Part shown: positions 510 through 33,021 of the stretch, one piece after another
How the letters are laid out: every line of letters begins with the position of its first letter
Position numbering within the stretch: the first letter of the stretch is position 1
From: Hyaloraphidium curvatum SAG 235-1
Lineage: Eukaryota; Fungi; Monoblepharomycota
Length of the DNA: 64,000 bases
Reading direction: 5' to 3'
Assembly: GCA_025558095.1 (NCBI GenBank)
Contig: JAIVFI010000003.1
Span: 372,001 to 436,000, forward strand
Notes under the pieces: model-generated
Seen by the model: the letters and a program-made list of their open reading frames with translations, nothing else
What the model was told of the DNA's origin: nothing
The model's database searches: none
Made by a program: the position numbers and the translations under genes

Positions 510-617
510 CGGGAATGGGAGGCGGGGATGGTCGTGTGTATATACGCAGGCTGGGTTCATGCTTTTCGGCGGAGGATAGCTAGCTCGGGGCTTTCGGTGT
601 AATCCTTTCTTTCAACG

Positions 618-1463: not shown

Positions 1464-1612
1464 TGGGCCGTACATCGGTTGGAGGGGAGGCATCGCGGGG
1501 AAAAGGGGGGCAAGTTTGAAGCTTGGAGAGGCGCCTTCTGAGACCGGTCACGGAGCGCAAGAGCACCGTTATTCGGGGACGCGTTCAGAGAGGGAGAAGG
1601 AAGGCAGCCGTG

Positions 1613-2642: not shown

Positions 2643-2787
2643 ACGGACAGTCGAGGCAGTTGGAAGTAGTGACGTCTGTTAGGTATCGTACCAAGCTACA
2701 TACGAGTGGTTGATCGTGAGGATCCTCCGGGTATCTCTGTCTATACATAAATGACCAAATCATGCATGTTCACGGGATTGCACCAGC

Positions 2788-4702
2788 CTAGATGGAAACC
2801 TCGCGACCGAACCAGCAATCGATGTCCCAGAAGGGGAGGCCCCGATTCCGAAAGGCCTGCTCGTCGGCAAGGCTTCCTCCGTTGACGACGCATCTGATGT
2901 CCTGGATAGTGTTGATGAGGACGATGATGTCGTCCGCGCCGAGCCCCCTCCAGCGGAACGAAAGGATCTTCTTGTTGCACGCGAGGTAGATCTGGCCCAT
3001 CACGGCCACGAGCCCGCGCACCAGCCGCCTGAACGCCGCATCCAGGGACTCCAGTCCGTGTTTGACGGTGAGGCAAGCGAGGCGCACGGGCACGTCCATC
3101 GTCCGCAGCCTCGAATTGAGATCCAGCTGCCGCTTGCGGTGGGGAAGTGCCTTGTAGAACTCCACGGTCCTGTCGAACATGATGTGGATGTTCCTGCGAA
3201 GGGCCTTGAGCCGCCCAACGAAGCCGCGTGCAGCACGGACATCATGGCGCACGACGATGAGCATTTCCAGCAGGGCAAAGGCCTCGACAGTGGCGTAGTC
3301 AACGTATATCTCCTTCCTCCGCTCGGGAAGCTCGGGAAAGGAGTCGACCATGGACGAGAAAGCCGTAAACTCCCCGTCGTGCGAGAAGGGTGCGTCAAAG
3401 AGCGCTGGCACGTTGTCGGCGATCGCGAGCGCAGCCTTGCTCTTGGGATTGGCGAGCGCCGGAGGTGGCGTGAGCCTCTTCTTGACCCTGGTCTTCAGGA
3501 TGTTGAAGCCGATCCGGCACTTGTCGGCGAGGTTGAGTGAATCGTTCGAGCTGTAGGCAGGCGAGGTTGGGCTGGCCACCGCCGTCGACCCATCCAGATC
3601 CGTGTCCACGGGGCTGCGCTCCTGCTCGGAGATGTCCGCAAACAAGCCATTCTGGCTGCAGCACCGGGTGACTTCCAAACCAAGAGAGGCCCAGGCGTTG
3701 AGCTGCAGGTCAATGTTGGCATCGGCGGCGGGGACCGCGACCGGCTTCGTGACTCGGGAGTACGTTTCGACGAGGTCGGAGATGACGCTGGACGTCATGT
3801 CGGTGCCATACTCTTCCTTGCCCGAAAGCGCGTTGGCGTTGGCGGTGCGGATGGTCGCAACACTGGTTTCAACCGACTTGCGGAGGTGCGAAATAGAGTG
3901 TGCGTGAGCTGGAATAGTCTGAAAGGAACTGAAGTATCAGAGGGCTGATAGCCGAGTACCGTTGCACATGCAGCTCACCGGCTCGGTCGATGAAGGCGCC
4001 TGAACTGCGAGGTCTTGAAGGTCCTTGAGCTCGAGTGTAGCAGAGGTCTGCGCATCGAATGCCGCGACTCTGTCGAGTGAAGCAGGCTGACCAACTGAAG
4101 GCTGCGCCGTTGAAGACTGGTCGAGAATCGCGCCCCCATTCTCGGCAGAGAAGATACCGATGGTTTCGTACTGAGCGCTCCGCCGCCAGACGGACGGCAC
4201 GGGCTTCTTGACCGACTCGCCGTCCTCGAGGACCGTGAGCGTGTCGTCGTCCGCTTGGTCGAAGTACTGGGATTGGCGCGATGCTGTCAAGTAAGCGCGG
4301 GCGCCGCAGAACGGGGCCTCCACGCACCTTTGCGACGTTCAGTGGCAAGACCTCCATGACCTCGGACGCGTCGGACCGAGGGTCGGCCTCGATGAAAGCA
4401 CTCTTCAGGACGGGGCGGTGCCTTTAGCACATGTACGTGGCGAGGACGGGCGCAAGTGCGACGCACCAGCTCTTCTTGCTGGAAGTTGAAGCGCTCGAGT
4501 TGGCCGGCGGTATCGGTCCGGGCTACCGAGTCGTTGCGGGACTTTTGGGGATGAGCAAAGAGGTGTCAAACAGACGCATGTTAGCTCTCGTTTCCCGGAA
4601 GCCAACACCCACGTCGGCGAGTGCGGTCTTGAAAACGTCGTTTTCCGAAGCGGCAGCTTGCGGTGCCTTCCGTGGAGGGCGGAACGGAGTCAGGTTCGAC
4701 AT
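2788..4702 (-). CDS. Hypothetical protein (about 5 exons; disordered N-terminus, helical C-terminal domain)
   Basis: ORF pieces 4523-4708, 3937-4323 and 2788-3798 join through GTGGGT/GTGCGT/GTGAGC..YAG introns; no family recognised. Confidence 0.65.
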
Positions 4703-6182
4703 GCGCATTTGCGCGGTGGGCCCTCACCAGTGCGCTGAAGCGGTGAACGCCGCGCAGCGGCTTGGAAGACATGCTTTTTCGAGCTGACTGATTGAAGCGC
4801 AGGTCGCGGCGGCGCTAAGCAGGGGTGCTGGGGCGCGGAGGGAGCCGAGGTGTGGTTTGAGGTGGTTCGCTTGCGACTCAGCCCACCGCGCTCGCGCACT
4901 CGAGTCATCCCGTGCCGTGGCCCTAGGCAACAAGCGAGCACCACGCTCCGGGCATCGCACAGCGTTTTGAAGCGATGCTGGGCCCGCACCGGGTCTGCTG
5001 CGGGCTTAGGAAACCGCGCCGGGCCGGCGCCGCGCCGAGCGGCAATGGGGCGTCCGCCGGCTTCCCGGGCCTCTCTCCGAATCGTTCGAGCCCATGTGGC
5101 ATCCAAAACGCTTGCTTGGGTGCCGCCGACCGTCTGGCAGCCCGTCGAAGCGTCGCTTGGAGCGAGAAGCCCCCGGACCGCTGGCGTGTCAACCCCGAAT
5201 CTGGGCAATCGAGGAACTGGATCTCCGTCGGCTTCCCAGCTCCACAAGAGCTTGCAGAAACAACAATCCGTGACGGATGGTACAAAACCGTTCGTGTTCC
5301 TAAGCTGGAAGAGCCGGATAGAACTTCTTTCTTTGGATCGGGCGGAAAGCTTACGGCCGCGGTGGATCAAGGCACCGGAACTGATCTTGGAAGTCTGTGC
5401 TTATCTGAATCCGTGCACCAGTTTCAATCCCGCGCCAGAATGATGTGCATGTGTTTGCTCGACGGCGCCGCAGAAAGCGGTCGCGTTCTGCAGGGAAGGT
5501 CCGCCGACATTGCACTGAACGAAACTCGGCGCGCCGCCCGGATCAGCTCAAAACATTGCATTCAGATCGAATCCCGGATTTTGGAGGCCATCGCAACGGG
5601 ATTGTGTTCTCGGGAGAGGCCGTCGAAGGAAGGAGGTACCTCGGAACCGCGGATCCTTCAATTCCCCTCGGCGTTCAAATCCGGGCAGGTGACCCTCGAC
5701 CAGCTCCATTCGGTTGTTTTCTATTGTGTGACGTCCGTGCGGGACGCGGCGGCGCCCGACGCCCGTCCGAGCAGGCTTTGCGTTGGAGTGTGTTTGGGTG
5801 AGGGGCTTCGGAACTGATGGAATCACGTTGCGCTTGGACTCATCGCGCCCTTCGTCTCCGGCTCATCAAAGCGACTTCGGCTCCGTCTTTGCGGTACGCC
5901 GACTACTCTCGGGTCGAGAACTCCGGTGGAGCGGGGTTTGGCTCAGTGGGACACTCGCCTCCGATGATGTAATCGACTTCCGTCGTTGCAATGACAGGGA
6001 ACCAGCTGATGTACCTCATTGCGAAGAACAGTAGAAGTAGTTTATTCGTTTTGCGCTACAGATACATTGCAGTTTGCTCTTCGGCGTCATCATTCGGCCC
6101 GCGAAAGTCCGCGACTTGGGGTGACGGCTGTCCCCGATTGAGAGTCGCCCACACGGCGGCTTCCGGGGAGCGGCCCGCGGCG

Positions 6183-9100
6183 ATGGCGGGCAAGAAGGAG
6201 GTTTTCCTGGTGGAGGACGAGTCGGATGCGTCGTCCGACCGCCCGCTGAACGTCTACGAGCTGTCGGACGACGAGGGCGCGGCGCCGGCGCGGGCCAAGC
6301 TGCCCGCGGCGCCGGCGCGGCAGCCCTTCTTCGGCAGTGCGGCGGGCGGCCGCGGGCCGTCTCAGCCCGCATCACGGCCGCCGGCGCCCGAGGCGAAGGA
6401 GCGGGATCTGTGGAAGGAGTTTGCGCGCGCGCGGGAGGAGCAGAAGCGGGCGTCGGCGACCCCGCTGGCCCGGGCGCCCGCGGGGTCGGCGGCCGGCGCC
6501 TCGTCGGGCGGGACCAAACAGCCCGTCCAGGCAAAGATCGTGCTGTCGCCGAGCCGGCCGCCCGGGCTGGCCGGCAGGCCCACGCCGCCCACCGCCGCGT
6601 CCGTGCAGGTGTCCTCGACGAGCCTCTCGCGCTCCGGGTCGAGGACCGACTTTGTGGCCACGCAGCACCCCGTCGGACGGTCGCCGCTGCCGACTGCTGG
6701 ATCTGCAGGCCCGCTGGCGAAGCCGCCGGCTCCTGCTGCGACGTCGGGCTTCGGGAACTTTTCCATTTCGTCGGGAAGCTCGCGCCCCACGGGCAGCCGG
6801 GCGAGCCCGAGCATGCCGAGCTCGTCAAAGGTGCCGACCAAGCCGTTCGACCCGGCAAAGGAGTTTGCCGCCTTCCGCACCGGCTCATCGCGCTTCGGCG
6901 GCATGGCCAGCGTTTCCTACAAGACGCCCTCGGGCTTCATCCACATGGGCACGCTGCCGCAGAAGACCGCGGGCCCCAGCAAACCCTACAAACCCTCGCT
7001 GCCGGTGAAACAGCCGTCGTCGAAACCTGCGAACCCCTTGCTGGCGTCGATCCGCGCCGAGGCGAGGGCGGAAAGCAAGCAGCGGCAGGTCCAGGCGCCG
7101 GGGCCCGTTTCGGGGGTCCGGAAGCCGGGCGTTTCGCCGCCGCGGGGCAGGCCGACTTCGAGACCGGGGCGGACCGTTTTCGACAGCTCGACGCTGGAGG
7201 ACGAGGATTGGGCGAGCAACGATGCGCTGAAGGACGTGCGTTCCCTATTGCCACACCTTCCTGCGATGCTTTGTCTCACTTGTTTCGTTGCAGCTGATTG
7301 CCGACCACGAAGCATCCATGCAGGAGCGCCGCTCGGTCATGGCCGTCGAGGGCGACCCGATCAAGGTCTCGAACCGGCGCGCGGAGCGCGAAGCCAACAA
7401 GGCCTTCGAAAAGGCCAAGTTGGGCGCCGACACGACCTACCTGGACAGCGAGGTCCTCTCGTGGAGCTTCGCATCGCTCTCGGACGACCGCCCCCCGTTC
7501 GACCTGCGGACGCTGAAGAAGGTGCCGCTGGAGTTCCCCTCCATCGCCTCGTACCGGGACATTTTCAGGCCGCTACTGTTTCTCGAATGCTGGGAGCAGC
7601 TGTCCAACGCGAAGGAGGAGCTGGGAGACTCGGCTGAGCCGTTGGTCATGCGCCTGGAAGCTGTGGCCTCGGTCGACAGGTTTCTCGGTGAGTTTTCTAG
7701 CAAATGCTAAAGCAACTGGGGCCGTCCGACTCAAATTCACTTCAGAGATCACGTTCGCAGTGCAGACCAAGGAGTTCAAGCTCAACTCCGTCGGCGAGAA
7801 CGACCTGGTCAACTGCGTCCTCCGCCCCGACGACGGCTCCTCCTCCTCCGTCGCCTTCATGGGCCGCGTCATCTCCACGTCCATGCGCAAGGATGAGACC
7901 CGCACGGTGCTCAAGGCGCTGGGCGGGCACCTCCTCCCCTCGCTGCGCACGCAGAGCGCGTGGGCCGTGACACGGCTGATGAGCCTGACGACGGTGCACC
8001 GGGAGTACGCGGCGATGCTGGCGCTCGAGTACTTCCCGCTGCGGGACGAGATCCTTCGGCCCAAGAAGGGCGGGCCGCCAAAGGTCGACATGGAGAGGAT
8101 ACAGGAGGTGCGGGAGGCGTACGGGGTCAACGGGCCGCAGGCGGAGGTGATCGCGACGGTGCTCGGGGCTTCGTCGGGGTTCACGCTGTGCCAAGGGCCT
8201 CCGGGGACCGGTGAGCATGGTTTCGGGAACGCAATGAGGCCAGCTCACCCCGGTACCCAGGCAAAACCAAGATGATCCTCGCGCTCATCGCCTCGCTGGT
8301 CAAGGAGTACCGTTCCGGAGCCGGACCAGCTCCTTCCAAGGTCTCCATCAACTCGGCGAGGAAAGGCACCCACCTTCTCGTGTGCGCGCCCAGCAACGCC
8401 GGATGCGACGAGATTGTGCGGAGGCTGAAAGCTGGTTGGTCGTTGCCCCTGCGCCACGATTGCACGATGCTCATGTTCTCGCGCGACCGAACAGGCATCA
8501 ACCTTCCGAACGGAGAGACGCTCAAGATCAAGGTCGTGCGCGTCGGCACATCGGACGCCGTGCATCCCGAGAACCTGGACGTCTTCCTGGACAACTTGGT
8601 GCAGGAGGCCCTCCTGCAGAGCGACGAGTACCAGAAGCTCCCGCAGAAGGATTCCAACAAGGCGGAGCTGAATTCGGTGCAGGCCTCGCTGCGCAAGGTG
8701 CGCGAGGAGATCGACGCCCTCGAGGCCGCGAAGAAGGCCGCGGATCCGGACTCGGAGGAGATGGTGGAGGCCAGGGTGCAGCTCCGCGAGGCGCTGGACC
8801 GCAAGCGTGCCCTGCTTGCCAAGCAGGAGAACGCGCGCGGGGTGGCTTCCGAGGCCGAAGCCAGGCTCGCGGGCCTCAAGAAGGAGACGCGGGTGCGCAT
8901 CCTCGAGGAGGCCGACGCGGTGCTGTGCACCCTGTCGGCCAGCGGGCAGGACATGTTCCCGCAGCTTTCGCAGGCGTTCCAGACCGTCATCATCGATGAG
9001 GCGGCCCAGGCCGTGGAGCTCTCGGCGTTGATCCCCCTCAAGTACGGCGCCGTGCGCTGCGTGCTCGTCGGAGACCCGCAGCAGCTCCCCCCCACGGTGC

Positions 9101-10095
9101 TTTCGCGCCACGCCATCGACCTCTCGTACGAACAGAGCCTGTTCGAGCGGCTGAGGAGCGCGGGACACTACTCGCACCTCCTCAGCATCCAGTACCGTAT
9201 GCACCCCGACATCTCCGTGTTCCCTTCCACCTTTTTCTACGAGTCGCGGCTGCAGGACGGCCCCGGCCTTTCTCTCTCCACGCGCCGGGAGTGGCACGAG
9301 TGGCTTGGACCCTACGTTTTCTTCTGCGTCGAGGGACGCGAGGCTTCTTCCGGACATTCCCTCTACAACGCGCGCGAGGCGGATGCCGCCGTCGCGCTCG
9401 TCGATTCCCTCCTCAACCGATACCTGCGGCTCAACTTCAGCTCCCGGATCGGCATCGTCTCGCCGTACAAGAAGCAGGTCGGAGAGATCAAGAGGCGGCT
9501 GCGCGAGCGGTACGGCAAGGATGTCCTGAACTACCTGGATGTGAACAGCGTGGACGGGTTCCAGGGACAGGAGAAGGTGCGCGAGGACCTGCACTCGTGA
9601 ACAATCGCAGCGAATGCTGAACTATGGCTTTCTTCAGGACATCATCATCTTCTCGTGCGTTCGCGCAGGCTCCGGTAGGCTCGCTGCTGAACGTCCTGAG
9701 AATGTTGGCTGACTGGACTTCAGATCGCGGCATTGGGTTTCTGAAGGACCTTCGGCGTCTGAACGTCGGTTAGTACGAGTGATCCACCACATCTTGGTTG
9801 TTTCTGAGTTTGTGCTCCAGCGATCACCCGCGCGAAAGCGTCGCTGTGGATCCTCGGGGACGCTTCGTCACTCTCGGTCGATTCGACCTTCATGACCCTG
9901 ATCCAGGACGCCAAGAAACGGAGCTGCTTCCGGGCGTTCGACAGATCGCTCACGCAGCTGAGCTCGCATCCGCCGGACAACTGGAGGGCACGTGCTTCGC
10001 TGCCGGGGTCACCCGTCGCAGCACGGCCACCTGAGGTTGCAAAGAAACGGCCGAATAGCGGCGATTCTGTAGCTGCGAAGCGGGCGAAGAATTGA
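6183..10095 (+). CDS. Sen1/senataxin-like Upf1-family SF1 helicase (multi-exon)
   Basis: Motifs FPSIASYRDIFRPLLFLECWEQL, CQGPPGTGKT (spliced), LLVCAPSNAGCDEI, IIDEAAQ, VGDPQQLPPT, LSIQYRMHP, IGIVSPYKKQ, VNSVDGFQGQEK, RRLNVAITRAK. Confidence 0.9.
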
Positions 10096-10132
10096 TGAAT
10101 GCTGTGACGGGAGACACAAACTACCCATCCTC

Positions 10133-11376
10133 ATGGCTGCAATCGTGCGCGTGTTCACGCTCGGGCTCCTTGGAGACATCATGCTCGGCCGTCTGGTTGA
10201 CCAGCTCTTTTGCCCCGTGTGCGTTACCGGGCCACTCGCCGCGGAGGACAAGGCCTACGCGTCGCATTACCGAGAACTATACCGGCGCGAAGGTTACACG
10301 TACGGGCCGTCGAGTCCCTGGGGCACCATGCTGGAGCACTTGCACGCGACGGATTGGAACGTCGGGAACTTGGAAACGTCCCTGACCACTTCGGCCAGAC
10401 TCTGGCCGAACAAGACCTTCAACTTCCGTGCCCACCCCGATCGCGTCGAATCGCTTCGGGCCGCTCGAATCGGACACGTATCGTGCGCCAACAACCACGT
10501 GCTAGACTTTTCGGAGGAGGGCTTGCAGGATACGATCGAGAGCCTGGAACGCGGAGGCATTTCGTTCGCTGGGATTGGGAGAACGAGGGCTGAAGCTCGT
10601 GGTCCGCGCTTCCTCGAGGTGCCCTTTAGGCACGATCGATCTGCCAAGCCGATGTCGATTGCCTTCTTCTCTGCTTCGGACCATCCCGAGGATTGGGCGC
10701 AGGTGGAGGGCTTCTTCTTCTTGCCCGTGGACGACGATCCGCGACCCAAGGAGCTAGCGGAGCAGATAAAGGCCGCTAAGGCTCAGTCCGACCTGGTGGT
10801 TTTTTCTTTACATTGGGGGTAGGTTCTGAGCAGCTAGGCATGCACAGCAGCTAGGCATGCACGTTTCTGCTCAACTAGGCCTCAAGGCCAAACTATCAGT
10901 GGATTCCGAACGAACACATACAGAACCTTGCGCGCTGGTTGATCGATCAAGGAGTGGATGTCATCCATGGCCACTCGAGCCATCACGTGCAGGCCATCGA
11001 GATCTACAAGGGCAGGCCCATATGCTACGGTCTCGGGGATGCTGGGGACGACTACATCGTGCACGAGCGGTTCCGGAACGATCTTTCGTTCTTCCAGAAG
11101 CTCCTCTTCAGCGTGGTGGACGAAGACGGCAGCCGCAGGGTCGAACTCTCACACGTTGATCTGATTCCCCTGAAGATTTCCCGAATGATGATGCATCGGA
11201 TACGGAGCAAGCCGCACACAAAGGAAAACGGTGACACTTTCGAACCATCTCATGATGCCGCTGCGTACGATTTCTTGCTGAGGACAATGAAAGATCTGTG
11301 TCGACGCGCCAACGACGGGCGCGATCTCATCGGCGAGATTCCCGGCGAAGACAAACTTAGGCTCGCAGTCTCTTGA
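10133..11376 (+). CDS. CapA/PgsA (PGA_cap) family metallophosphatase-fold protein, one intron (~10819-10887)
   Basis: Motifs GDIMLGR, GNLETSLT, FNFRAHP, ANNHVLDF, SLHWG|PNY, IHGHSSHHVQ, YGLGD are characteristic of the CapA family. Confidence 0.88.
10829..10862 (+). repeat. Perfect 17-bp tandem duplication AGCAGCTAGGCATGCAC x2 inside the CapA-like intron
   Basis: Read directly: 10829-10845 and 10846-10862 are identical. Confidence 0.95.
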
Positions 11377-11437
11377 CAAGTCTACCGCGTTACAGCTCTT
11401 CGTCTTTCGCTTTTCCTCCATGACATAGACTCCGTGA

Positions 11438-14400
11438 TCAAGATTTTGGCGGTGGTGGTGGCGCCGGCTTCCCGGACGAGAGAAAGTTCTGCCCCAAGGC
11501 CGCCATCTTTGCGAACGCAGACGTGGTGTTCTGCGCGATGGTCGAAGATGCGGGTTTTGGCGACGGAGGGGGCACGGTGGAGGATGGGGGCTTTGGCGAG
11601 GGAGGAGCACCAGCGGGTGCCGTCGGGCTGACCCCTCCCACGACCGCGCTGGATACCGGGGAGGTCGCCGGTGCCTCCGAACGCGTAGCAGTGTTGCTAC
11701 GGCCCATGTTCATCCAGCTTTTGAAGCCGCTGGGGAAGGAAATTGAGGTCGATTTCTGCGCGGCGCTCGCGAGTTGAGCGGCCGTCGAAACCGAGGAAGT
11801 GAGGGCGCCCTGGAGCACGGCAGTCGCAGCTGCGGTAGCTGCGCTTGCCGCAGATGCGGCGGAGGAGGCCGTAGATCCAGGTGGTATTGGCGGTGGCGGC
11901 GGAGCAGGAGGCGGCGGCGCCGTCGAAGGCGTCACCACGAGTCCCACCGTCCTCCTGTTGAAGGTGTCTATGGCTGGTCCCTGGTTCGGCTTGGGAATGC
12001 CTTTGAGGTCCAGAATTCGCGTAAAGATTGCCGCACTGGCATCCGATCCAAAGAGCAGCAGATACGTCGATACCAAGCCCTCGTGTGGTTCCGCCGGAGT
12101 CATCAGGACCTTGAGCAGCGTTTCGCACTTTGCAACACCCTTTGCCAGGATCTTGGTGTAAACCGCTGGTACCGCCGACTCGCGATCTCCGTCGATGCGT
12201 GGCATGTGTGCAAAGATGCTGTTGACGGCGTTGAGGTCCAAAAGCATCTGCTCGGCACCGACTTCTCCGATGGAGCGGCAGCGGAAGATGGAACCGTAGA
12301 ACTTGGCAAAGACAGATCTTAAGGACGGCATTAGCGAGGGAGGTGGGCGAACCTAGCGAACCTACTCGGCAACCTTGTCGCAGAAGCTGCGGAAGTACTT
12401 GCTTGCCGTGAGCGTTCGCTTGATCATCGGGACGGTCGACTGAACGGCAGATTGGATGACGAAAACGTACTCGGACTGGTCGGCAGTGTTGGTCATGGTG
12501 TTCCAAGGGATCTTGGTGGTCATGATATGCCATGCCGGTTCGATCGCGTTCTCCAAGCCGCGAACCAGAGCTAACATGCAGCCGTTTGCAACGCTGCCCG
12601 CGGAGCCTGAGTGCGGTACGGACAGATTCGTCGTGTATCACTTACTTGAGGAAAATGTCTCGCTCGGTCGACATGTCCACGCTGTCCCTGAAGTTGGGGT
12701 CGATCTTCTCCTTCAGCTTGTCCTCCAGCTGGGATATCGTCACGTGGCAATATTCGGCGGTATTGAGAAGAAGACAGATCTCGTGCGCGGACGCCTCATT
12801 CAGCGCGGCACGTTCCTCTCGCGGCAAGCGGCCCGTCAAGAAGTCCGCATACACCCGCAGATACTTGGCAAACACTTTGCATAGGTTAAGGAACGGTTGG
12901 CCAGTCGACATCTTCGAGCAATGGACAAGCGTTTGACGATACGAGTAGAAGAGGTCCGTCGAAGAAGCGAGCACGGAAATGCTCGAGTCGTCGTCCGCCA
13001 CCGGCTTAGCACGATACTGAGCCATCATGTCCGCAAGATTCCGGTCTTCCGCAGCAATGTAATGGTCAAGGTAAGGCTCGAATGCCACAGATATGCGCCG
13101 AGCAAACTTGGCCGGGTAGCTCGGGGCATCCTCGCTGCGCCTGTCCATGGAAACGCGATCCGGATCCTTCCCCGCGAATCGCCGGTCCAGCTTGTTCTCA
13201 AAGTCGATGGTTTGCTGCAGCGTCTGAAGCATGAGCTTCACATCCAACGCGCCGCGCTGGTTGTCTTTTGCGAGAACGTCGACGAGGTCCTTCCGGGTAT
13301 CGTCGCAAAACTTCTCGCAGAGAACCTCGGCAACCTTCCAATGCTGCGGAAAAATGGCCGCGTGCTCGTCGTCGTGCGTCTTCAACTCGCGTCGAAGCCA
13401 GGCGTAGCGCCTCGAGGTGTTGTCCAAAGCGGCAACTTCGTCGTTGCCCCGGAAAATAGAGCGGTAGTCCTTCAGCTCCATGTCACAGTACCAGTCAATG
13501 AGCTGGCGCCTACGGATGTGTGAGCACAGTGGACACGGGACACGAGGTGCCCAAACTCACCGTGGGTTGTCCCTCTGGATGACATCCGCCAAAACACAAG
13601 CCTCGTTCAGAATGCCCACAGAATTGCGCAGCGTTGCTTGACTAAGGAAAGCGCCCTCAAACTCGTTCAGAATCCTCTTCTTCAAGTCCGACTGAATATT
13701 GTCGACCTGTTCAAAGACATCCTGGACGAACTTGATTGTGCGATACGAGGCAAAATGGGAGAGGAGTTGCAGAATAGCCTGCAACAACTGCGCAGTCTCG
13801 CGATACTGACGCTTGCTCGTCATCACGGCCAGCTGTCCCACGGCAGAAACTGGGCGAAGGTTAGCTGCCACGGCAGATCCTCGGCCATGTGGACCGTACC
13901 GAGCATCTGGAGCCTTCGCAGCATGGTTATGGACGACGTGAGATTGCGCTTGGCATAGTCCAGAGACTTGATGTCCTTTGTAATCTCCTGCACCATGTCC
14001 TCCGACTGCGTGGCGCGTTCCTTGATCCTTTTTATCCGGGCGTGCAAGGTCTCGATCGCCTGCTTCACTTCCCGGAGCTCCTCCACGGCTCCGGCGCCGG
14101 CTTCCGTCTGCGTCCGCACGAGCTCACGGATCTCCTCGTCGAGCTTCTTGACCTTCGTCCGTAGTTGAGCCAGGATCCTGTCCAGGTGTGCCAGAGACTG
14201 CTCGTTCGGAAACGCGGTGTTGATGTAATCCACGGCGTTGAACGACGACGAATCCACGCCGATCGCGTCGTCTGATTCGCCCAGGATTTTGTCAATCGCG
14301 TCCTCGAGGTCCGCGGGCAGCTTTGCCAGGGAGTCGCGTCTCTCCGGAACGAGAAGATCCACGGGTCCCTGCTCCGGGAAGCCATTGACCCCCTTCCGGG

Positions 14401-14497
14401 TCGCAGACGACGGAGATGGCAAGGAAGGCGATCCGGGAGCGTCGTGCTTCGCGCCATTGGGCACTTGGAGCCCCGCAGACGCGCCGGGTTCAGACAT
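11438..14497 (-). CDS. VPS53: GARP/EARP complex subunit Vps53 (multi-exon)
   Basis: FNAVDYINTAFPNEQSL, ITKDIKSLDYAKRNLTSSITMLRRLQML, LDNTSRRYAWLRR, LLNTAEYC, DQSEYV, GAEQMLLD. Confidence 0.95.
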
Positions 14498-14824
14498 CGC
14501 GGAGCTTCCACGCGTTCCCGAGGTTCACGGCTCCCGAGCCGGCATGGAGCCACGACGGCCCCACAAACGAGCGGAACTATGATCCAGACCCGTGCCACTG
14601 CTCTGCGGGCACAGAAAGCTGGGTCACGGGGAAAGGTCGCGGGGTGACATTCCTCGCTGTGTTCCTCACTGCGGGGCACAACTGCCAATCGCACACCCCC
14701 TGGTCCGAACCTCCTTTCCGCATCATCGGCGATCAGATCATCAATTGATCCAGATGTACAGCAGCCTAACATCGCTTTTGTGCGAAGCGCCAGGAAGCCA
14801 TGATCGCGGGCGGCGCACTGCCAT

Positions 14825-16198
14825 TCATCCCCGCGTCAAGAAGGCGTTTTTCGTTGTGTCCGTGTGCGGCAGAGAGACGGTTGTCGGGGGCACGTAAGTG
14901 CCAGTGCCGACGTTGGAAGGAGACCGTGCCGGATTGAGCACGAACCGGAAGAACTCGTACTGCACAAAACGATCAGCATGAGGCGGCGCAAGGTTGGTGA
15001 AGGAAGGGAACCCACAATGCTCCAAGAAACCGCCGTGCTCGGCATGTGGGAGAGTATCCGCGGCCTCATCCCACGAGTAAAGCCCTTCAGCCCATCGCGC
15101 TCGTAGATGATCTTCGCCGCGGTCCACAGCCCGGAGGCATTCCGAATGACGGGGTCGGTGGACGTGCCCCGGGTTTGCAGCAACGTCTTTGTCACGTCCA
15201 GAGGCTGACGCACAAAACTAAGTACGCAAACGCGTAGGCGACGTCGACGAGACCTACATTCGTGAGCAAGGAAGCCAACCCGCCCGCGACCGCGCCCGAG
15301 GTGACGTGTGTCAGAGGGTTGTAGCCCCCCTGAGGATTAAGCATTTGCCGAAAGTGCTCGTACGTAGTAAACTGGATGGATTGGAAGGGTATCGACATCA
15401 TGAGGGTGGTGGGGTATGAGACGTAGAGCGCCTTGATGCCCTCTGCCCGAACGATTTTCGACGCGCAGTCGAACACGCCGCGGTAGCTGGAGCCGTACAG
15501 CTGCATTCTTTGCTTGACGACTGGCAAAAAACACGCCGAATAAGCGAAAGATCACAGCTGAGCCGGCGCCGTCCCAACCGTCGAACGGGTTCATGAACGC
15601 GTCGTGTGCGATGACCGCACAGGCACCAGAAGCCGCGTGCTTCGCGTGGCTGGAGCCCGTTGCTCCGAACCAACGGTCAAACAAGCGGGCGTTGTGGAAC
15701 GTATCCTTGCAATGTTCGTAGGTAGCAAAGTAGATGGCATGGGCCGGTCCCGCGCCGAGGACCACCGATCCAACCCCCCTCCACAGCGACATGAAGCCCT
15801 CCGTCGTCAGAATTCGCGAGAGCGCGTTTGACATGGAGCTGTAGATCGCCTGCGGCGATGGGTTGAGGACCTGCATGCGCGTCTTGACCGCGTCCAGGGG
15901 AAACATGACGGAGTGCTCCAAAACTGTCGAAACCGAACCAAGCGAGGGCGCAGCGAAACGAGTTAGGGGTTCCGACCCTTTCAGAAAGGGCACAGAGAGG
16001 GGAGAAACCCACTGCCTGCGAGGGCGCCCGCCGTCATGTTGACCGCCACGCTCGCGTTCGGCAGCGACTCGTAATCATCCTCCGCATCGTCCGGGTCCGA
16101 ACTGTGATGATGCGCTGAGAAAACGCGGTTCCAGCGGGACATCGACCGCAGCGGTCAGCAGGGGACCCGGGAGATCAGGCGCCGGGGCGCTCACCCAT
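14825..16198 (-). CDS. MRS3: Mitochondrial iron carrier (mitoferrin, Mrs3/Mrs4), multi-exon
   Basis: Three carrier repeats (MFPLDAVKTRMQ, MNPFD.VKQRMQ, PLDVTKTLLQ) with LGAGPAHAIYF and SYPTTLMMSIPF. The first exon is only ATG-G before a GTGAGC donor. Confidence 0.92.
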
Positions 16199-16672
16199 TG
16201 CTACCGGCTCAGACTCCCGGAACGCAGAAAGGTTCCGAATCTGAGAATGCCGCAACAGCGGCGCCGCTGCAGCCGGGCTCGGGAGCGTAGTCGCCACGAT
16301 TGCCGGTCTCCGAAAGAGCTTTGCGGCCAGGAAAACTCGGAAGCTGCGTTCCTCCGGGTCTCCCTCCTAGCGCCGGAGTCGACACAGCATGGGCGGTTGT
16401 GGCCTCTTTCCCTCGTCAAGGTGAGGCTTTTGATGGCCTCCGGCCCCTGCAAGGCGCCGCGGGCAGGGAGAGAAAGTGTGACCAGATGCTTCTGAGCGAG
16501 ACTGGCTGATCCTTCGAGCTCCACTGTTCTGCCGTCCTGAGCATCGGAATCGAATTGACTACAAAGACAGCCTGAAACTACGTGACACCGTGCAATAGAC
16601 ATTACAGAATCCGCTCTCCGTGGCATGAGAGACGTGCTTCATCCATCCAAGCCGCAGGGACACTCTCCGTCC

Positions 16673-17532
16673 TCACACCAAGCCATCGTCCTCCGAACGC
16701 AGGTACTCCCCGCAATCAGCCTGGTGGAAAACCACTATGGCTGTCGGATCGAGCTTCCGCATGTCGGCAGTCGATCGGGCGGTGACTCCAAATCCCTGGA
16801 AGATGTCCACAGCGTTCAGCTTCTGCAGGCGAACGTGGTCCCAGCGAAACCCACGATGGGGATGTCTGCCATATTGTAGATCACAACGCCCTGGTGCTCG
16901 GGCGTATCGTCCGTTATGCGGCCCAGGTGCGCCTTGAGAACGTGGTTGCCGTAAAGGAAGGGCATCTCGCCGTTCGGTTTCACCCAGACCTTGTACTGCG
17001 GCCAGGTGGAACGATGAGGAAAGATAAGGCATCCCGTAGAAGGTGCGTCCGCACCTTGGCATATCGTGCCAGGTACTCGAGCGCCGTGATCGACAGGTTG
17101 AACTTGCCCGACTTGGTGAACTTGCCGAAGCAGGTCCCGAGGCTCATCAGGTGATCCCGTCCGATGCTGACCGCTCTCCTCATGATCGCCTCGCTGTGGG
17201 GCGGTGGCACAAACAGGTGCAAGGGCGATTCAGTCTTTGCTGGTCGGGAAGGTGCTGGTTTGGCCCACCTGACGTAGTACACCCGGTCTTTCTGCATCCG
17301 GAAACAATACTGCTCATCTGGTCTGTCGATGAGAAGCGCGATATTCTTGCCGATGCTGGTTTCGGGCGAGTTCCGGGCCCCGAGGGCACACGCAGCACGC
17401 CGGGGCAGTGAAGCCGTCAGATCCGTCCGTTCGGGCCAACGAGCCCCCGACGGCCCCGCCGGGTTCCGAAGCTCACTACTTGGCCAGTTTCTCGAACAGC
17501 GTCTTGGTCTCCTCCTCCGTGAGCGGCCTCAT
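16673..17532 (-). CDS. NIP7: 60S ribosome biogenesis protein Nip7 (multi-exon)
   Basis: [54 protein letters not shown]. Confidence 0.96.
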
Positions 17533-25776: not shown

Positions 25777-27699
25777 TCAGGGAACCTCGACGTCGTCCGC
25801 GCCCACGGCAGCGTCCGGGTGCTCCATCAGCCAGCGCTCCCGTGCGCGCCGCCCCGCCTCGCGGACCGCGCGCGAGTCCTCCTCCACCTTGTACAGGTCG
25901 CAGCGGTTGCATTCGCCGCACGGGCCGGGCAGCGGGCGGAAGTGTTGGCTGCGAACGGGCCGGCGGTCAGCAAACGCGCGGTGCAAAACGCGGCGGGCGG
26001 ATTACCAAAAGTGCCCGTAGCCCTCCTGCCCGATCTCCTTCCTGCACACGTAGCACAGCACGTAACCGCACCCCGGGCATGTCATCTTGTTGCACCCGTC
26101 CGCCTTCTGGAACTGCAGCGCGCACCGCGGGCACGTGCGCACCAGGGCCAGGGTCATGGCCTGCTCGACGTACTGCCGCAGCGAACCCGCGTGGTCCCCG
26201 CGGCAGCGGTGCAGGGTGCCCCATTCGCGGCCGCAGACGAGGCACGAGCGCCGCGAGCAGCGGGGGTTGAGGCAGGTGAAGAGGCGGGCGGGGGGAGGGC
26301 CGGGGGGGCGGGGTGGGGGGAGGAGGAGGCGGAGGAAGCGCGGGACGGGGTGGTCCGGGTCGAAGGGGAGGATGCGGAGCAGGGGGAGGGCGATCAGCGG
26401 GGGCACGACGACGGAGAAGAAGATGGTGCCGGCGACGAGGGGCGCGACGGGGGAGAGGAGCGCCGAGATGCAGGTCCAGAAAAAGAGCGCGCGCGCGTCG
26501 ATGGGGCCGACCTCGGGCGGCGGCGGGCGCACACCGCGCAGCCTGTCCTCCGCAAGGCCGTCCACCTCGGCGTACGGGCACCACGGGCACTTGACGTACG
26601 GTAGTCCGGCCTTTTGGAGCTCGGCGACCGCGAGCTTCTCGCGCCACTTGGAGTGCACGTCGGCGCCCGCGCAGAGCTCGACCACCTCGTCGTCGAAAAA
26701 CTCCGGGCACCGCCCGCCCTCGGACCCGTCCATGCACTGCAGCCCGCCGGCGTCGGCCGCCGCGGTGCCGCCGGCCTGCCCGAACACGGCCTCGGACGCG
26801 TAGCGGCCGACGCACGGCCGGCAGAAGAGGTGCCCCGCGGGGCACGCGGCCATGTCCTCGAAGGCGAAATCGTCGAAGCAGCACCCGCAGGGGATCGCCT
26901 GCCCCGACTCGCGGTACTCGCGCTCGTTGATCTGCGCGGCGACGGCGGCGTCGGCGCGGGCGGCCTCTTCGGCGCGGCGCCGCGCGAGCTCGTCCACGTC
27001 GCGGAGCAGGTCGACGTCGAACGCCGCGGGGTCGGACGACGGGCGGCGCTGGAACACCTTGGAGATCAAAGTGGGTATCCAGCCGGGGCGGCCCATAGCG
27101 GCGAGGCGGGCGTGCGACTCGAGGTAGTCGTCGTTGCACTCGGCCATGACGGCGCGCACGGTCGACTTCCAGCGGTCCGGAAAGTCGTTGCACAGGCGCG
27201 TGAAGCAGCCGCGTGCGTAGTGCGGCGAGCGGAAGCGGTCCTTTGCTGCCAGCGGCTCGCCGGGTTTGAGGCGCACGGGGTACCCGGCCTCGCCGGGCCG
27301 CTGCAGCGCCAGCAAGGCGTCCGCGGCGCGGAACACGGTGTCGTGCTGGTCCGCCAAGACACGCTGGCGCAGGAACGCGGGGTCCGCGTCTGGGAAGGCG
27401 TCCGCGAGCGCCTCGAGCGCGTCGTTCTTTGCCGTCGTGGAACCCGGGCCTCCGCGCGCCCGCGGGTACTCGCCCGCGTTGAGCTCGAACACCTTGCGGG
27501 CGACGCGGGCGGCCACGCGGTCGGGCGGCTCGCCGAGATCGTAGTACGCGAGTTGCTGCTCCACGTACGCCGGGTCCGCGTCGGGCAGCAGCGGCGAGAG
27601 GGCCGCCAGCACCGCCGCACGCGCGGCCGCCGAGCCCGCAGCCGCCGCCCCGCCGCCGCCCGCGGGTCCGCCCAGCCGCCGCCGCTCCCGCAGGAACAT
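25777..27699 (-). CDS. RBR-type E3 ubiquitin ligase, RNF216/TRIAD3-like
   Basis: CUE-like FPDADP repeats; RING1 CGCCFD..CPAGHLFCRPC; IBR CPWC..CLNPRC..CLVC..H; RING2 CPRC..KADGCNKMTCPGCGYVLCYVC; terminal exon HFCQHFR..CGECNRCDLY. Confidence 0.9.
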
Positions 27700-27845
27700 C
27701 GCTCGGAACAAGGGCCGAACGGGACGGGGGAACTTCTGAGAAGTTGAGAGCTACGCAACTACTCATCATCATCGGTCAGCTTGCCAAAGCCATGCACCTC
27801 GAATTGACGAAAAGCATGCGCTCTCTATGTTCGAAATACGTCAAA

Positions 27846-30800
27846 TTACAGAATCTTCGTCAGCTCGTTCTGAATCTCGACGAAATCCGGGCGGCATGCC
27901 GGATCCTGGTCCCAGCAGCGCTCCATCAACGCCCACATCGCGTCCGGCACGCCGGCAGGCCGTGTCGGGCGTATCTTTTCGATGGCGACCTTGTAGACGA
28001 TCTGAGAACGATTGGCTGATGAGCATTGTGAGCGATCCGCGAGGGCCGGTGGACATACCGCGGCCACGTTGTTCAGATCGTCGAAGGGGTACTTGCCCTT
28101 GCTCACGACCTCGTAGCAGAGCATCGCGTACGCATACACGTCCGCCGGGGGCTTCAGGGTCTCGCCAGCCAGCATTTCCGGGGCGACAAAGCCGGGCGTG
28201 CCCTGCATCCCGTTGCCGGTCCTGTTGGTCGACTTGCTGACCTCGACCCGAACCCGCGAGAGGCCGAAATCGGTGATGACTGCCCTCATCCCATCGACGA
28301 GGACGTTCAGGCTGCGGCAAGAGCGGGGAGATCAGACCCCGAGCAATTGGGAGAGCATGCGGGCCCACCTCTTGAGATCACCGTGCAAGATTCCCGATGC
28401 ATGGAGGTAGGCCATGCCGCAGGCGACGTCGTGGAGGAAGCGGCGTCCCAGCGCCTGGTCCCAAGCGCGCTGGCCGAGGAACTTGCGGAGGTTGCCCTCC
28501 TCGATGAGGTCCATGACCATCATGGGCGGGGATATGCAGAAGGCCATCAGAGGGAGTACTGCGTGATCGTGCATCAGCGATCGGGCAGGTGGAGCCGGCG
28601 GCGGAGCCCTACCGTTCCTCTGGACGAGCCCTTCCCAGTTCGCCACCTCCTTCACGAACGCCGTCATCGTCTTCTCGTCCAGGTCGCCCTTGATGGTCTT
28701 GACAGCGACCTTGTTCGAGCCCCGGAGCGTGCCGACGTACACGACGCCGAACCCACCCTCGCCCAGCCTCTGGGATCGGTCGATGGCCACGTCTTCCGCG
28801 TGGATCAGGAGCTTGGAAGCCGACGGGGATATGTTGACGGCGAAGCCGTCGCCGCCGCTGCCCGACGAAGCCGCGAGGACGGCCGTGGGGGTGCTCCGCT
28901 GCGATGCCAAGATCGTCGCGGAGGATTTCGATTTCGAGTACGCGATCGGGGGCTCGAACAGGGCGTCGGCGGCCTTTTGCGTCGCAGCTCCCGGGGCCGG
29001 CATGGCCGGCACGATCAACTCCGCCGCCGCGGGCTCGGGCTGCGCAGCCGCCAGTGCGTTCGCGGGTGCAACGGGGGACTTCTTGAGCCCGTGATCGGCT
29101 TCTTCGTCGGCGAGGGTCGACACCGAATCCGAGTTGCCGTTCTCCGCTTCGGCGGCTTTCCCGCGCTTGGCATGAACGTAGTAGCCGATGCCTCCGGCGG
29201 CCGCGATCGCCGCAACGCCACCAACAACGCCGCCCACGATGGCGCCGATGTTCGTCGAGGATGAAGCCGGAGGAGGAGCGGTAGCGGGGCCGGCGGAGAA
29301 GGTCCACTGCCCTGCCTGGGCGCTGGAGCACGAACCGAGGCCCACCGACCCCGCGGAGGGGACCTGCATGCAGCCGCTAGCGGCATCCATGTTGGCGTTC
29401 ATGAGCTTCGTCGAACCCGAGGAGTTATAGAGCACCCAGTTGGGGAACAGCTGCGGCTCGCCCTGGCGGCGCTGGCGCCGGCCCGCACCCGAAGTCGGGC
29501 AGCTTCCGTCGATGACCGCAAAGGAGGAGGAGGCGGAACGCTGGGCCTGCAAGCATGAAGATCCGCGCTGCAACCTGATGGCAGCCGAGCCGGGGATGGC
29601 CGCCACAGCATACTCGCCGGAGGATCCGTCCGCGAGCACGCACCCCGGATTGCAAGAGAGTCCCTTTGTTCCAGAAGTAAGGAAGATCCGAGAGCCCGCT
29701 TCCAAAGGGAACGTGGTCGCGCCGGAGGGGGTGGCAATGGCAGTCGGAGCACTTGCAAACAGAACCGTGGAAGTCGGCAGCGAGTTGCTGGTGGTTGAAG
29801 TAGTGGAAGGAGTCGACTTAGTAGTCGTTGTAGTCACAGATGAGGCCGGTGGCAGGGCAGTTGCCGCAGGTGGATTGACGGTGGGAATCTGACAGACCCC
29901 GCCGCTGCACCCAGTAGCGCGAGAGTCGCAAGCGTTGTCGCACCGTCCGCAATGCTTGACGTCAGAACTCGTGGAGACGCAAGCGTCACCGCATTTCGTA
30001 AGCTCGCTTGAACAGGAGCAAACTCCGGAAGCGCACTGAACGGTGCCGATTGCGGTGAGACTGGATATGAGAGAGAATCGCAAAGCAGACTCACGATCTG
30101 TCCGCTAGGACACGCGGCTCCGCATGTGCCGCAATGCCGCAGATCCGAGTCCAACGCAACGCAGTTCAGTGAAGTCTGGCTGCCACAGTTTGTCTGACCC
30201 GGCGAACACGTCGGGCGGAATTGGCAAGCGCCCGAGGAACATCCGGTAGAGTCTGCAGGGCAGCTGTTGCCGCAACGACCTGCATGACAATGAGTGTGAT
30301 GATTCCGAAAGACGATGGCCTTGCTCACCACAATAGTTCCGATCCGAATCGATGGCGACACAGAAGCCATTACAATCTGTGAGGCCGCTGGGGCAGACGC
30401 ACCGTCCTCCTGAACACGTCTGTCCATTAGGGCAAGATCTGCCGCAGGATCCACAGTTCTGCTGGTTCGAGTCGAGGACAACGCAGTTGAGCGACGTCTC
30501 GCTGCCGCAGTTGGTCTGGCCGGCGGGGCACGTGGGACGGAACTGGCAATTGCCAGAAGAGCATCCAATCGAATCAGAAGGGCAGCTGTTGCCGCAGCGC
30601 CCTGTCCGAAATGTAAGCGGGCGCCTCGCAAGCGTTGCTTGCCGATCCTACCGCAGTGGTTCTTGTCCGAGTCGATGGATACGCAGTAGCCATTGCAGTC
30701 CGTTTGGCCGCTCGGGCAGACGCATTTGCCCCCCGTACAGGACTGTCCATTAGGACAAGATCTGCCACAGGCTCCACAGTTCTGCTGGTTCGAGTCGAGG

Positions 30801-31749
30801 ATGACGCAGTTGAGGGACGATTCGCTGCCGCAGTTGGTCTGGCCGGCGGGGCACGTGGGACGGAACTGGCAATTGCCAGAAGAGCATCCAATCGAATCAG
30901 AAGGGCAGCTGTTGCCGCAGCGTCCTGGAAAGACGTCAGAAGGGCGTCCTCCCCAAATGCTGGTGAACAGCTCACCGCAATTGCTTCGATCTGAGTCGAG
31001 AGCCACGCAGTAGCCGTTGCAGTTCGTGAGGCCATTCGGGCAAAGGCAACGTCCCCCCGAGCAAGACTGTCCACTGGAGCACGTCGCGCCGCAGGCCCCA
31101 CAATTGCGATTGTCCGAGCCAAGTGCGACGCAAGATCCTCCGCAGTTTGTTAATCCAGAGTTGCACATGCAGTTCCCGTTTGAGCACTTCACGGGCAGTC
31201 AGTAAACCGGGGCCAAATAATGAGGAGAAGTGCCACCCACAGTTGAGCCTGCAGAACATGTCACACCTAAACATAGATCCCTGGAAACGCATCTGGCATT
31301 GCGGCACTGTCGAATCATTTAGCAGAAGAGGCCTGCGAAAGATTAATCGCCCTCACCTCCTGATCCGAACTGCAGCGGTGATCACAGGACCCGCAGTTCT
31401 CGGAGTTGGTGCCGAAGTTGACGCATCGGGAGCGGCTCCCGATGCCGCAAACGTCGGGCGCATATGAGGGGCAGTTGCATTTATCCCAGCATAAGCAAGT
31501 TCCAGTTGTTTGGCAGTCTTGGCCGTACTTGTTCAAGCAGTTGCCAGACCTCATTTGGCAGTCCGTGTTTCCAGATGGGCAGTACGTAGCGTCACATGGT
31601 CCTTCAGAGCATGGTTTGCCCCAGTCGCGACAATCAGCTGACGTGAGTTTGTCGCTGGGGCACGACAGGAGACAATCATACTGGGCCGCCAGGACCGGCA
31701 GAATCATGGCACAAAAGAGCACGACCAGAAGGAAGGCGGTGAGAGCCAT
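27846..31749 (-). CDS. Single-pass receptor-like TKL protein kinase with Stig1-like Cys-rich ectodomain (about 10 exons)
   Basis: Signal peptide MALTAFLLVVLFCAMILPVLAA; nine [DN]xx[NHY]CGxC repeats; S/T stalk; TM IGAIVGGVVGGVAAIAAAGGIGYYV; kinase motifs LGEGGFG, VAVK, HGDLK, DFGLS, GTPGFVAPE, DVYAYA, CWDQDPACRP. Confidence 0.88.
30330..30975 (-). repeat. ~323-bp tandem exon+intron duplication in the receptor ectodomain
   Basis: About 100 nt are identical at 30499-30599 and 30822-30922 (offset 323). A more diverged third copy lies at ~30096-30280. Confidence 0.9.
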
Positions 31750-32379: not shown

Positions 32380-33021
32380 ATGAAGATCGCCGTGTTCGGA
32401 GCCACAGGGGGCACCGGCCTGGCGTTCCTCCCGCGTGCCCTCTCCGCGGGCCACACGCTGCGCTGCCTGGTGCGCAACCCGGCCAAGCTGCCCGAGGACG
32501 TGCGGTCCTCGCCGAACGTGGAAGTGGTGGTCGGCGACGTGACAAAGGACGAGAAAGCGATCGAGGACACCCTGTCGGGGTGCGATGCGCTCTTCATTAC
32601 CCTCGGCGGCGCCGGGACGGGCAGCGATGTCTGCTCCGTGGGCACGAAGAGGATCCTGGCCGCGGTGAAGGCGCTCAAGATGGACCCCAAGACGGTGGCC
32701 GTGACCTCGTTCGGCGTCGGCGACTCGTGGAACGACATCAACAGCTACTTCGTCCAGTTTTTGATCTGGGTCTTCATTGGACGGGCCTTGGCAGACAAGG
32801 AGATCCAGGAGGCGGACCTGAAGGCCGCGGGCCTGTCGCACCTGGTCATCGTCCGCCCCGGCGGCCTGACCAACGAGCCGCCGACGGGCAAGTGGAAGGC
32901 GGGCAGGTTTTCCACCCCGGGCGGCCGGATCTCCCGGGAGGACGTCGCGGCATTCTGCCTAGGGTGCTTCCACGACGGCACCGAGTACAAGAACCAGACC
33001 CCGACGCTGGTTTCCGTCTAA
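32380..33021 (+). CDS. NAD(P)-binding Rossmann protein, flavin reductase/biliverdin reductase B-like, intronless
   Basis: MKIAVFGATGGTG, LVRNPAKL, IVRPGGLTN, RISREDVAAF. Confidence 0.9.
   Translation: MKIAVFGATGGTGLAFLPRALSAGHTLRCLVRNPAKLPEDVRSSPNVEVVVGDVTKDEKAIEDTLSGCDALFITLGGAGTGSDVCSVGTKRILAAVKALKMDPKTVAVTSFGVGDSWNDINSYFVQFLIWVFIGRALADKEIQEADLKAAGLSHLVIVRPGGLTNEPPTGKWKAGRFSTPGGRISREDVAAFCLGCFHDGTEYKNQTPTLVSV

Follow-up and report, generated by a model that had tools for sequence, protein, structure and literature searches.

A probable receptor-like kinase with Stig1-type repeats and a predicted beta-trefoil in the ectodomain, encoded by the early-diverging fungus Hyaloraphidium curvatum

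Apart from IRE1 and histidine kinases, fungi are commonly said to have almost no transmembrane kinases, and a survey of 18 species counted 54 transmembrane kinases, with IRE1 as the main family (PMC10463195). Leucine-rich repeat (LRR) receptor-like kinases have been described from chytrids and zygomycetes, where they are proposed as sensors of the environment or the host (PMC13618815). Here, we describe a receptor kinase gene of one early-diverging fungus that differs from this general picture, Hyaloraphidium curvatum SAG 235-1 (Monoblepharidomycetes). The gene lies in a stretch of 64,000 nt, referred to below as the window (contig JAIVFI010000003.1, C3:372001-436000), of a 31.9-Mb assembly in 55 contigs. 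Its product is probably a type-I single-pass transmembrane receptor-like protein kinase, in which cysteine-rich repeats of the Stig1/MXAN_6577 type and a beta-trefoil module precede a tyrosine kinase-like (TKL) kinase domain. A preliminary description of the window, made from the letters of the sequence, had proposed a gene of about 10 exons spanning positions 27846-31749, and both the exon count and the span proved exact. The parts listed there also occur in the order given: a signal-like segment, a Cys-rich N-domain, nine repeats, a stalk, a second Cys module, a transmembrane helix with GxxxG motifs, and an intact TKL kinase. Likewise, its remark that single-pass receptor kinases are all but absent from model yeasts and moulds accords with the scarcity of transmembrane kinases in the survey cited above.

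The locus is an expressed, intact, and spliced gene. Its coding sequence (CDS) comprises 10 exons with a total of 3423 nt and encodes 1140 amino acids (aa); it starts on the minus strand at the ATG at 31749 and continues to the stop codon at 27848-27846, which is its sole stop. All nine introns are of the GT..AG type and 49 to 59 nt long, and the contigs of run X1 contain spliced joints (CT..AC on the plus strand) at eight of them. Since genomic DNA cannot yield such joints, run X1 represents transcripts, from which expression and splicing of the gene follow. A 66-nt micro-exon (22 aa, CRNARC...) between introns of 50 and 54 nt is visible only through these joints, as contig record 3 links exons 1, 2, and 3. 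Contig record 1 (2986 nt) extends from position 30479, in the repeats, to position 28074, in the kinase, crossing four introns; its 3' part appears to change into another sequence. The near-identical tandem repeats at 30480-30975 are crossed by no run X1 contig, as is to be expected when short reads are assembled. Exon 7, which is free of stops, extends from repeat 9 through the stalk, trefoil, transmembrane helix, and juxtamembrane region into the N-lobe of the kinase, and therefore these parts belong to one gene. Thus, exon 7 and contig record 1 together bear out the single transcript unit assumed in the preliminary description. The joined CDS was used to check frame and length, to provide query pieces for local phmmer and tblastn searches, and for comparison with the public protein model; family searches were made with single exons, uninterrupted frames, or that public protein as queries.

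The public model of the gene is a "hypothetical protein" of 1000 aa (NCBI DFJ74DRAFT_324043; P0172), identical to our 1140-aa model over aa 160-1089 and 1090-1140. It begins at an internal Met (aa 160) without exons 1 and 2, micro-exon included, and therefore without the signal peptide and the cap. Moreover, it reads through the last intron (28058-28002), which adds 19 residues to the C-lobe of its kinase; this intron has 57 nt, a multiple of three, is free of stops, and is found at the same place in all paralogues.

The predicted extracellular part begins with a putative signal peptide, followed by a Cys-rich cap. The N-terminal hydrophobic segment, the one transmembrane helix, and the KRGK motif after this helix suggest a type-I layout that fits the positive-inside rule, as read from hydropathy only. 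The cap (aa 23-110) matched no Pfam or NCBIfam family and had no counterpart in the paralogue loci by tblastn; its language-model neighbors are bacterial Stig1 clusters at 0.89, a weak lead. The array that follows contains 72 Cys, about 8 per 44-aa unit, with [DN]xx[NHY]CGxC signatures at aa 115-499. It includes a 323-bp tandem duplication at 30343-30927 (Tandem Repeats Finder, 88% matches), an exon-plus-intron unit coding for two repeats. The preliminary description had compared this repeat with Stig1, and part of the comparison stands: Pfam Stig1 (PF04885, gathering cut-off of 24.1 bits) matches one frame piece with an E value of 4.3e-13 (50 bits) and P0172 with an E value of 3.3e-29 (101.6 bits, 5 stretches). 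However, the match is limited to the C-terminal half of the profile (positions ~35-84 of 85), and the NCBIfam model NF041328 (MXAN_6577-like cysteine-rich protein) and bacterial relatives are closer. NF041328, with a curated cut-off of 100 bits, scored 105.7 bits (E 1.9e-30) on 30652-31186 of the minus strand, a query piece of two exons read through their in-frame intron. The search with the P0172 ectodomain returned 561 proteins at an E value of 1e-5 or better, led by large Stig1-only repeat proteins (top E 8e-152), and every named match was bacterial (Deltaproteobacteria, Myxococcales, Polyangiaceae, Kofleriaceae, or Acidobacteriota). An AlphaFold (AF2) model of a two-repeat unit had a mean confidence score (pLDDT) of 83.7, and its comparison with the PDB by Foldseek gave only weak, generic disulfide-rich matches (LDLR-A, TNFR, and R-spondin; E at least 0.15). 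As far as sequence comparison goes, the Stig1/MXAN_6577 repeat is a widespread extracellular scaffold, commonest in Myxococcota, and the link to plant STIG1 is that of a common Pfam family and not of specific kinship.

Between the array and the membrane lie the mucin-like stalk, likely O-glycosylated, and the second Cys module. In an alignment of 16 homologues (A1), this module showed six conserved Cys and an NSS sequon that is likewise conserved, and its basic loop contains an Arg that is invariant. Its AF2 model (pLDDT 89.2, predicted template-modeling score 0.84) matched ricin-B/CBM13-type trefoils (2vsa, 3win, 1qxm, and 8hvb) in VIA-align with Z scores of 12-14.6 over 110-133 residues. These matches included mosquitocidal toxin lectin domains, HA33, the carbohydrate-binding module of a lacto-N-biosidase, and mushroom lectins, as well as FGF and fascin; Foldseek gave a template-modeling score of ~0.55. 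At the level of the model, the beta-trefoil fold of aa 576-722 is established. The invariant Arg is at position 98 of the first sequence in A1 (~29440-29470), just past a conserved Cys-Pro, in a loop that reads RRQRRQ here and KRQ, RRS, or LRQ in relatives. Kex2-type processing at this loop stays speculation because the residue before the invariant Arg is not always basic. A metagenome scan with a single trefoil-module protein found no match. The transmembrane helix, the sole internal hydrophobic segment of the 1140-aa protein, has GxxxG motifs at 731, 735, and 736 and is followed by the basic KRGK on the predicted cytosolic side. The juxtamembrane region (aa 753-880) showed no Pfam domain and no SH3, a domain carried by the relatives P0002, P0004, P0011, and P0274.

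All kinase motifs are present (GEGGFGVV, VAVK, HGDLKSLN, DFG, and APE), and every catalytic residue is kept, but Gly replaces the Arg of HRD (non-RD). PF07714, which had been proposed as a check together with PF04885, matches P0172 with an E value of 1.4e-48 and 165.9 bits, versus 122.9 bits for PF00069. The catalytic loop HGDLKSLN is of the Ser/Thr or TKL kind and not the HRDLAARN of tyrosine kinases, which places the domain among TKL kinases. The best PDB matches of the kinase C-lobe were Eph, ABL, MLK1, and CTR1, and those of the close paralogue P0005 were Fes, Src-family kinases, RIPK4, EGFR, and CTR1. None of the best 60 PDB matches of the kinase was an IRAK or a plant receptor-like kinase (RLK) chain, and no RLK occurred among its named sequence neighbors, which were H. 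curvatum proteins first and then kinases of Agaricomycetes, Blastocladiella, Allomyces, and chytrids. A maximum-likelihood tree was built from 40 kinase domains, with two too-short green-algal rows omitted; in it, the H. curvatum kinases and those of the SRR23967301 assembly formed a clade with a support of 100/99. The wider fungal group around this clade, nearly all of it with HGD[LI]K, had a weak support of 81/84. We therefore tentatively assign the kinase to a fungal HGD TKL group rather than to RLK/Pelle/IRAK, from motifs, neighbors, and a tree that contains no IRAK or RLK reference. Because HGD is common to the whole group, the non-RD state would be a trait of this fungal TKL lineage and not one specific to receptors.

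The gene is one of several in the genome. The search for the same architecture, suggested in the preliminary description, found six more full Stig1-receptor kinases on contigs C6, C16, C10, C8, C24, and C38, all matching it in the order of their parts and in where introns interrupt the kinase, and a kinase-less copy on C47 (C47:1-9000, gene ~5669-4097, minus strand; NCBI P0001, 517 aa). This copy has Stig1 repeats, a trefoil, and a transmembrane helix; it ends after the helix, with no kinase within ~4 kb of contig downstream. The paralogue on C38 (P0274, 1724 aa) combines Stig1, SH3, and kinase domains. Among close paralogues, the kinase N-lobe and the middle exons are 82-92% identical, compared with 60-69% for the trefoil and ~62% for repeat 9; by this measure, the ectodomain diverges faster than the kinase. 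In a census of 29 kinase loci of the genome, 28 had HGD[LI]K, and in about 20 the open reading frame (ORF) of the kinase also contained, upstream of it, a 19-mer of strong hydrophobicity. Other members of the HGD kinase family carry ankyrin, LRR, Sel1, or SH3 domains. At three C6 loci (P0058, P0175, and P0186), HGD- or HLD-type kinases occur with LRR domains (PF13516), and therefore Hyaloraphidium also has LRR-linked members of this kinase family. These counts place the gene in a lineage-expanded HGD TKL family of dozens of members, most with a predicted membrane helix. Three of the paralogues (P0005, P0006, and P0007) are annotated by NCBI as kinase-only fragments. Since public annotation misses the signal peptide and splits several paralogues, proteome-based surveys will undercount such receptors.

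The most likely function of the protein, as its domains suggest, is that of a surface sensor. The repeat rod and the lectin-like trefoil would bind a ligand outside the cell, which may be a glycan or a component of a wall or surface; binding would alter receptor pairing via the GxxxG helix, and the kinase would then phosphorylate itself or its partners on Ser/Thr, possibly also on Tyr, signaling inward. A repeat module of the type common in Myxococcota may have come together with a fungal TKL kinase through domain shuffling, perhaps following gene transfer. Several points weigh against this reading. Run X1 is labeled just "RNA?" and is available as contigs only, and as the repeats break the assembly, none of them covers the whole gene. 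The contigs speak neither for nor against splicing of the last intron, which P0172 keeps in frame. Hydropathy is the sole basis for the signal peptide and the topology, and an in-frame ATG upstream at 31968 would add 73 residues, making the hydrophobic segment an internal anchor. The trefoil matched no Pfam ricin-B family (none at E 0.01), and where ricin-B lectins have (QxW)3 it has a single QxW-like motif (GQW) and one other conserved Trp; because of these two observations, sugar binding by the modeled trefoil is uncertain.

Other explanations must be considered together with the surface sensor. It is hardly credible that two genes, for a secreted Cys-rich protein and a kinase, were merged by the model or that the locus is a decaying pseudogene. 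The kinase-only NCBI models P0005, P0006, and P0007 and the lack of one contig over the whole gene might suggest so, but the stop-free exon from repeat 9 through the kinase N-lobe, the contig spliced across four introns from the repeats into the kinase, and the absence of internal stops in the joined ORF led us to reject both readings, and P0172 also joins the two parts. The preliminary description had gone further and proposed that a ligand-like domain is fused to its own receptor kinase; with a plant-STIG1-like ligand, this would give a tethered-ligand or self-activating sensing system. Plant STIG1 and GRI do bind LePRK2 and PRK5, and the Pfam Stig1 match is above the cut-off; the active GRI peptide, however, lies outside the Cys-rich domain. 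Furthermore, the match is confined to the generic Cys-rich half of the profile and takes the form of repeats; the bacterial MXAN_6577-like model is a much better fit to these, their nearest relatives are bacterial repeat proteins, and the kinase, placed with fungal HGD TKL kinases, appears not to belong to the LRR-RLK/PRK type. The same repeats are also found on a bacterial Ser/Thr kinase and on many non-kinase proteins, which fits a general extracellular scaffold. We consider the tethered ligand very improbable, and this claim of the preliminary description finds no support.

Two further readings concern what a surface sensor of this kind would detect. It might be an immune-type receptor, from a rapidly diversifying, tandemly expanding non-RD family that detects bacteria, algae, or parasites in parallel to the non-RD receptors of the IRAK family in plants and animals. 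The non-RD motif is universal in the family; the many paralogues differ in their ectodomains, one form having LRRs, and one copy lacks the kinase, as plant receptor-like proteins do. In addition, the ectodomain changes more quickly in evolution than the kinase, the internal repeat duplication is recent, and relatives occur in tandem arrays. On the other hand, HGD is also present in cytoplasmic ankyrin-linked members and in Agaricomycete kinases and is thus a clade trait, and an immune role seems unlikely to us, if worth keeping in mind. A sensor of cell wall integrity or mechanical stress, with the head and stalk anchored in the wall as in Wsc/Mid or WAK/CrRLK1L proteins and the kinase reporting stress, would accord with the Cys-rich head, the S/T/P stalk, and the single transmembrane helix, with the lectin-like trefoil next to the membrane, and with the conserved N-glycosylation sequon. 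This role is doubtful, as Pfam searches found no WSC, malectin, or EGF domain, and the trefoil is placed between the stalk and the membrane, unlike in Wsc sensors.

Table 1. Features of the receptor kinase gene, in positions of the window.
Feature	Position	Strand	Evidence or details
Whole coding region, receptor kinase gene	27846..31749	-	Frame analysis, intact joined ORF, contig joints at 8/9 introns, P0172 identity
Exons 1-5	31749-31357, 31306-31241, 31186-30976, 30924-30652, 30601-30329	-	Six-frame reading and contig joints
Exons 6-10	30279-30095, 30035-28613, 28558-28369, 28311-28059, 28001-27846	-	Six-frame reading and contig joints
Introns with contig joints, part 1	31307-31356, 31187-31240, ~30925-30975, ~30602-30651	-	Run X1 contigs
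Introns with contig joints, part 2	~30280-30328, 30036-30094, 28559-28612, 28312-28368	-	Run X1 contigs
Predicted signal peptide, aa 1-22	31684..31749	-	Hydropathy (Kyte-Doolittle 19-mer up to 2.79), then LAA/Q-type cleavage context
N-terminal Cys-rich cap, aa 23-110, 15 Cys	31420..31683	-	Composition
Array of nine Stig1/MXAN_6577-type repeats, aa 111-512	29901..31419	-	Pfam PF04885, NCBIfam NF041328, signature positions
Ser/Thr/Pro-rich stalk, aa 513-575	29712..29900	-	73% S/T/P/A; 28 S+T in 63 residues
Membrane-proximal beta-trefoil module (ricin-B-lectin-like fold, modeled), aa 576-722	29271..29711	-	Alignment A1, AF2, VIA-align, Foldseek
Single transmembrane helix, tandem GxxxG, aa 729-752	29181..29252	-	Hydropathy
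Low-complexity juxtamembrane region (Ala, Ser, Pro-rich), aa 753-880	28797..29180	-	Composition
TKL-type kinase domain, aa 881-1140, non-RD, exons 7-10	27849..28796	-	PF07714, motifs, tree

The gene has close neighbors on both sides. Downstream, ~130 nt from its stop, is a gene for an RBR/IBR-type E3 ligase (25967-27772, minus strand; IBR E 3e-7), in a region of 72-75% GC where, as an effect of base composition, several frames of either strand contain long ORFs. Upstream, at 32380-33021 on the plus strand, an NAD(P)H-binding NmrA-like protein is encoded (PF13460, E 7.6e-37). Contig record 3 continues from exon 1 through this NmrA-like gene, which therefore indicates an overlap of untranslated regions or neighboring transcripts merged by the assembly.

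Outside H. curvatum, relatives with the order Stig1, trefoil, transmembrane helix, optional SH3, and kinase come from a JGI metagenome (P0002) and from the SRR23967301 assembly; together with H. curvatum, these are the only sources in which the pairing of Stig1 with an HGD TKL kinase was seen. A Logan contig of SRR23967301 (L023, 15.4 kb, eukaryotic) has three or four tandem HGD receptor-kinase genes, one of them preceded by a Stig1-trefoil-transmembrane ORF (P0013). A different combination occurs in P0359, a metagenomic protein with a bacterial Hanks-type kinase at residues 15-263, a transmembrane segment at ~346-379, and then seven Stig1 repeats, encoded in a bacterial operon-like context; therefore, Stig1 repeats have been paired with a membrane kinase at least twice. 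In another bacterial locus (L045, JGI metagenome 3300082222, positions 1-17366), a cassette is present twice that encodes a TIR_2 protein, a protein of 256 aa, and a giant protein combining TPR and Stig1. The two copies flank two Ser/Thr kinases bearing Stig1 repeats, together with a DoxX/AhpC fusion, and the whole may represent an island for defence or sensing.

The literature searched contained no paper on receptor kinases of the Stig1 type or on kinases of H. curvatum, nor one that describes this combination of domains, and to that extent the novelty claimed in the preliminary description holds. It is narrowed by the sequence already deposited as the truncated hypothetical protein P0172, by the LRR kinases of chytrids (PMC13618815), and by P0359. 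These results emphasize that a repeat module typical of bacteria would form the ectodomain of a eukaryotic receptor, and they offer a starting point for how non-Dikarya fungi sense their surroundings. A broader and tentative possibility, which we think improbable at present, is that Hyaloraphidium, and perhaps other zoosporic-grade fungi, would have a plant-like surveillance by non-RD receptor kinases and kinase-less proteins, with ectodomains shuffled onto one fungal TKL kinase and diversifying toward microbes or glycans; in the present gene the ectodomain would be the bacterial-type repeats with the lectin-like trefoil, and in other members an LRR form. If true, it would be an independent invention in Fungi of non-self recognition by receptor kinases, with an ectodomain possibly derived from Myxococcota.

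Among the systems available for comparison, P0359 likewise unites in one protein a kinase, one transmembrane helix, and extracellular Stig1 repeats. In contrast to the H. curvatum protein, its kinase is N-terminal and has an HRD of the Pkinase type; in the tree it forms a long branch that does not belong to the fungal HGD group, and the two combinations arose independently. The MXAN_6577-like (NF041328) proteins of Myxococcota are the best-scoring family for the repeats, with hundreds of multi-repeat relatives of the array at 39-45% identity. These proteins are secreted by bacteria or located on their surface, and most of them lack a kinase, whereas the H. curvatum gene is intron-rich and fused to a TKL kinase. 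Plant STIG1 and GRIM REAPER share the Pfam family PF04885 with the repeats but are small secreted proteins with one Cys-rich domain, in contrast to the nine repeats of a 1140-aa membrane kinase, whose closest repeat relatives are not from plants. On the kinase side, the fungal HGD TKL kinases of Agaricomycetes, Blastocladiomycota, and chytrids share HGD[LI]K with it; among the named relatives listed, none had a Stig1 domain in the pre-computed Pfam annotation. The LRR receptor-like kinases of chytrids and zygomycetes have another ectodomain, and the reports on them contain no Stig1-repeat or trefoil receptor.

The plant lectin-RLKs, cysteine-rich RLKs (CRKs), wall-associated kinases (WAKs), and CrRLK1L proteins have the type-I single-pass layout that is predicted here: a signal peptide, an ectodomain that is Cys-rich or of a carbohydrate-binding type, a transmembrane helix, and a Ser/Thr kinase. 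To our knowledge, no known plant RLK class has an ectodomain of Stig1/MXAN_6577 repeats and a trefoil. Unlike the plant RLKs, the H. curvatum kinase appears not to be of the RLK/Pelle type and groups with fungal HGD TKL kinases; its nearest plant matches, a PAS-domain model of Adiantum and an uncharacterised one of Smallanthus, are outside the fungal HGD group. As sets, the two resemble each other: the plant classes form large paralogous families with kinase-less receptor-like proteins alongside, as H. curvatum does with its own expanded family and its kinase-less C47 paralogue.

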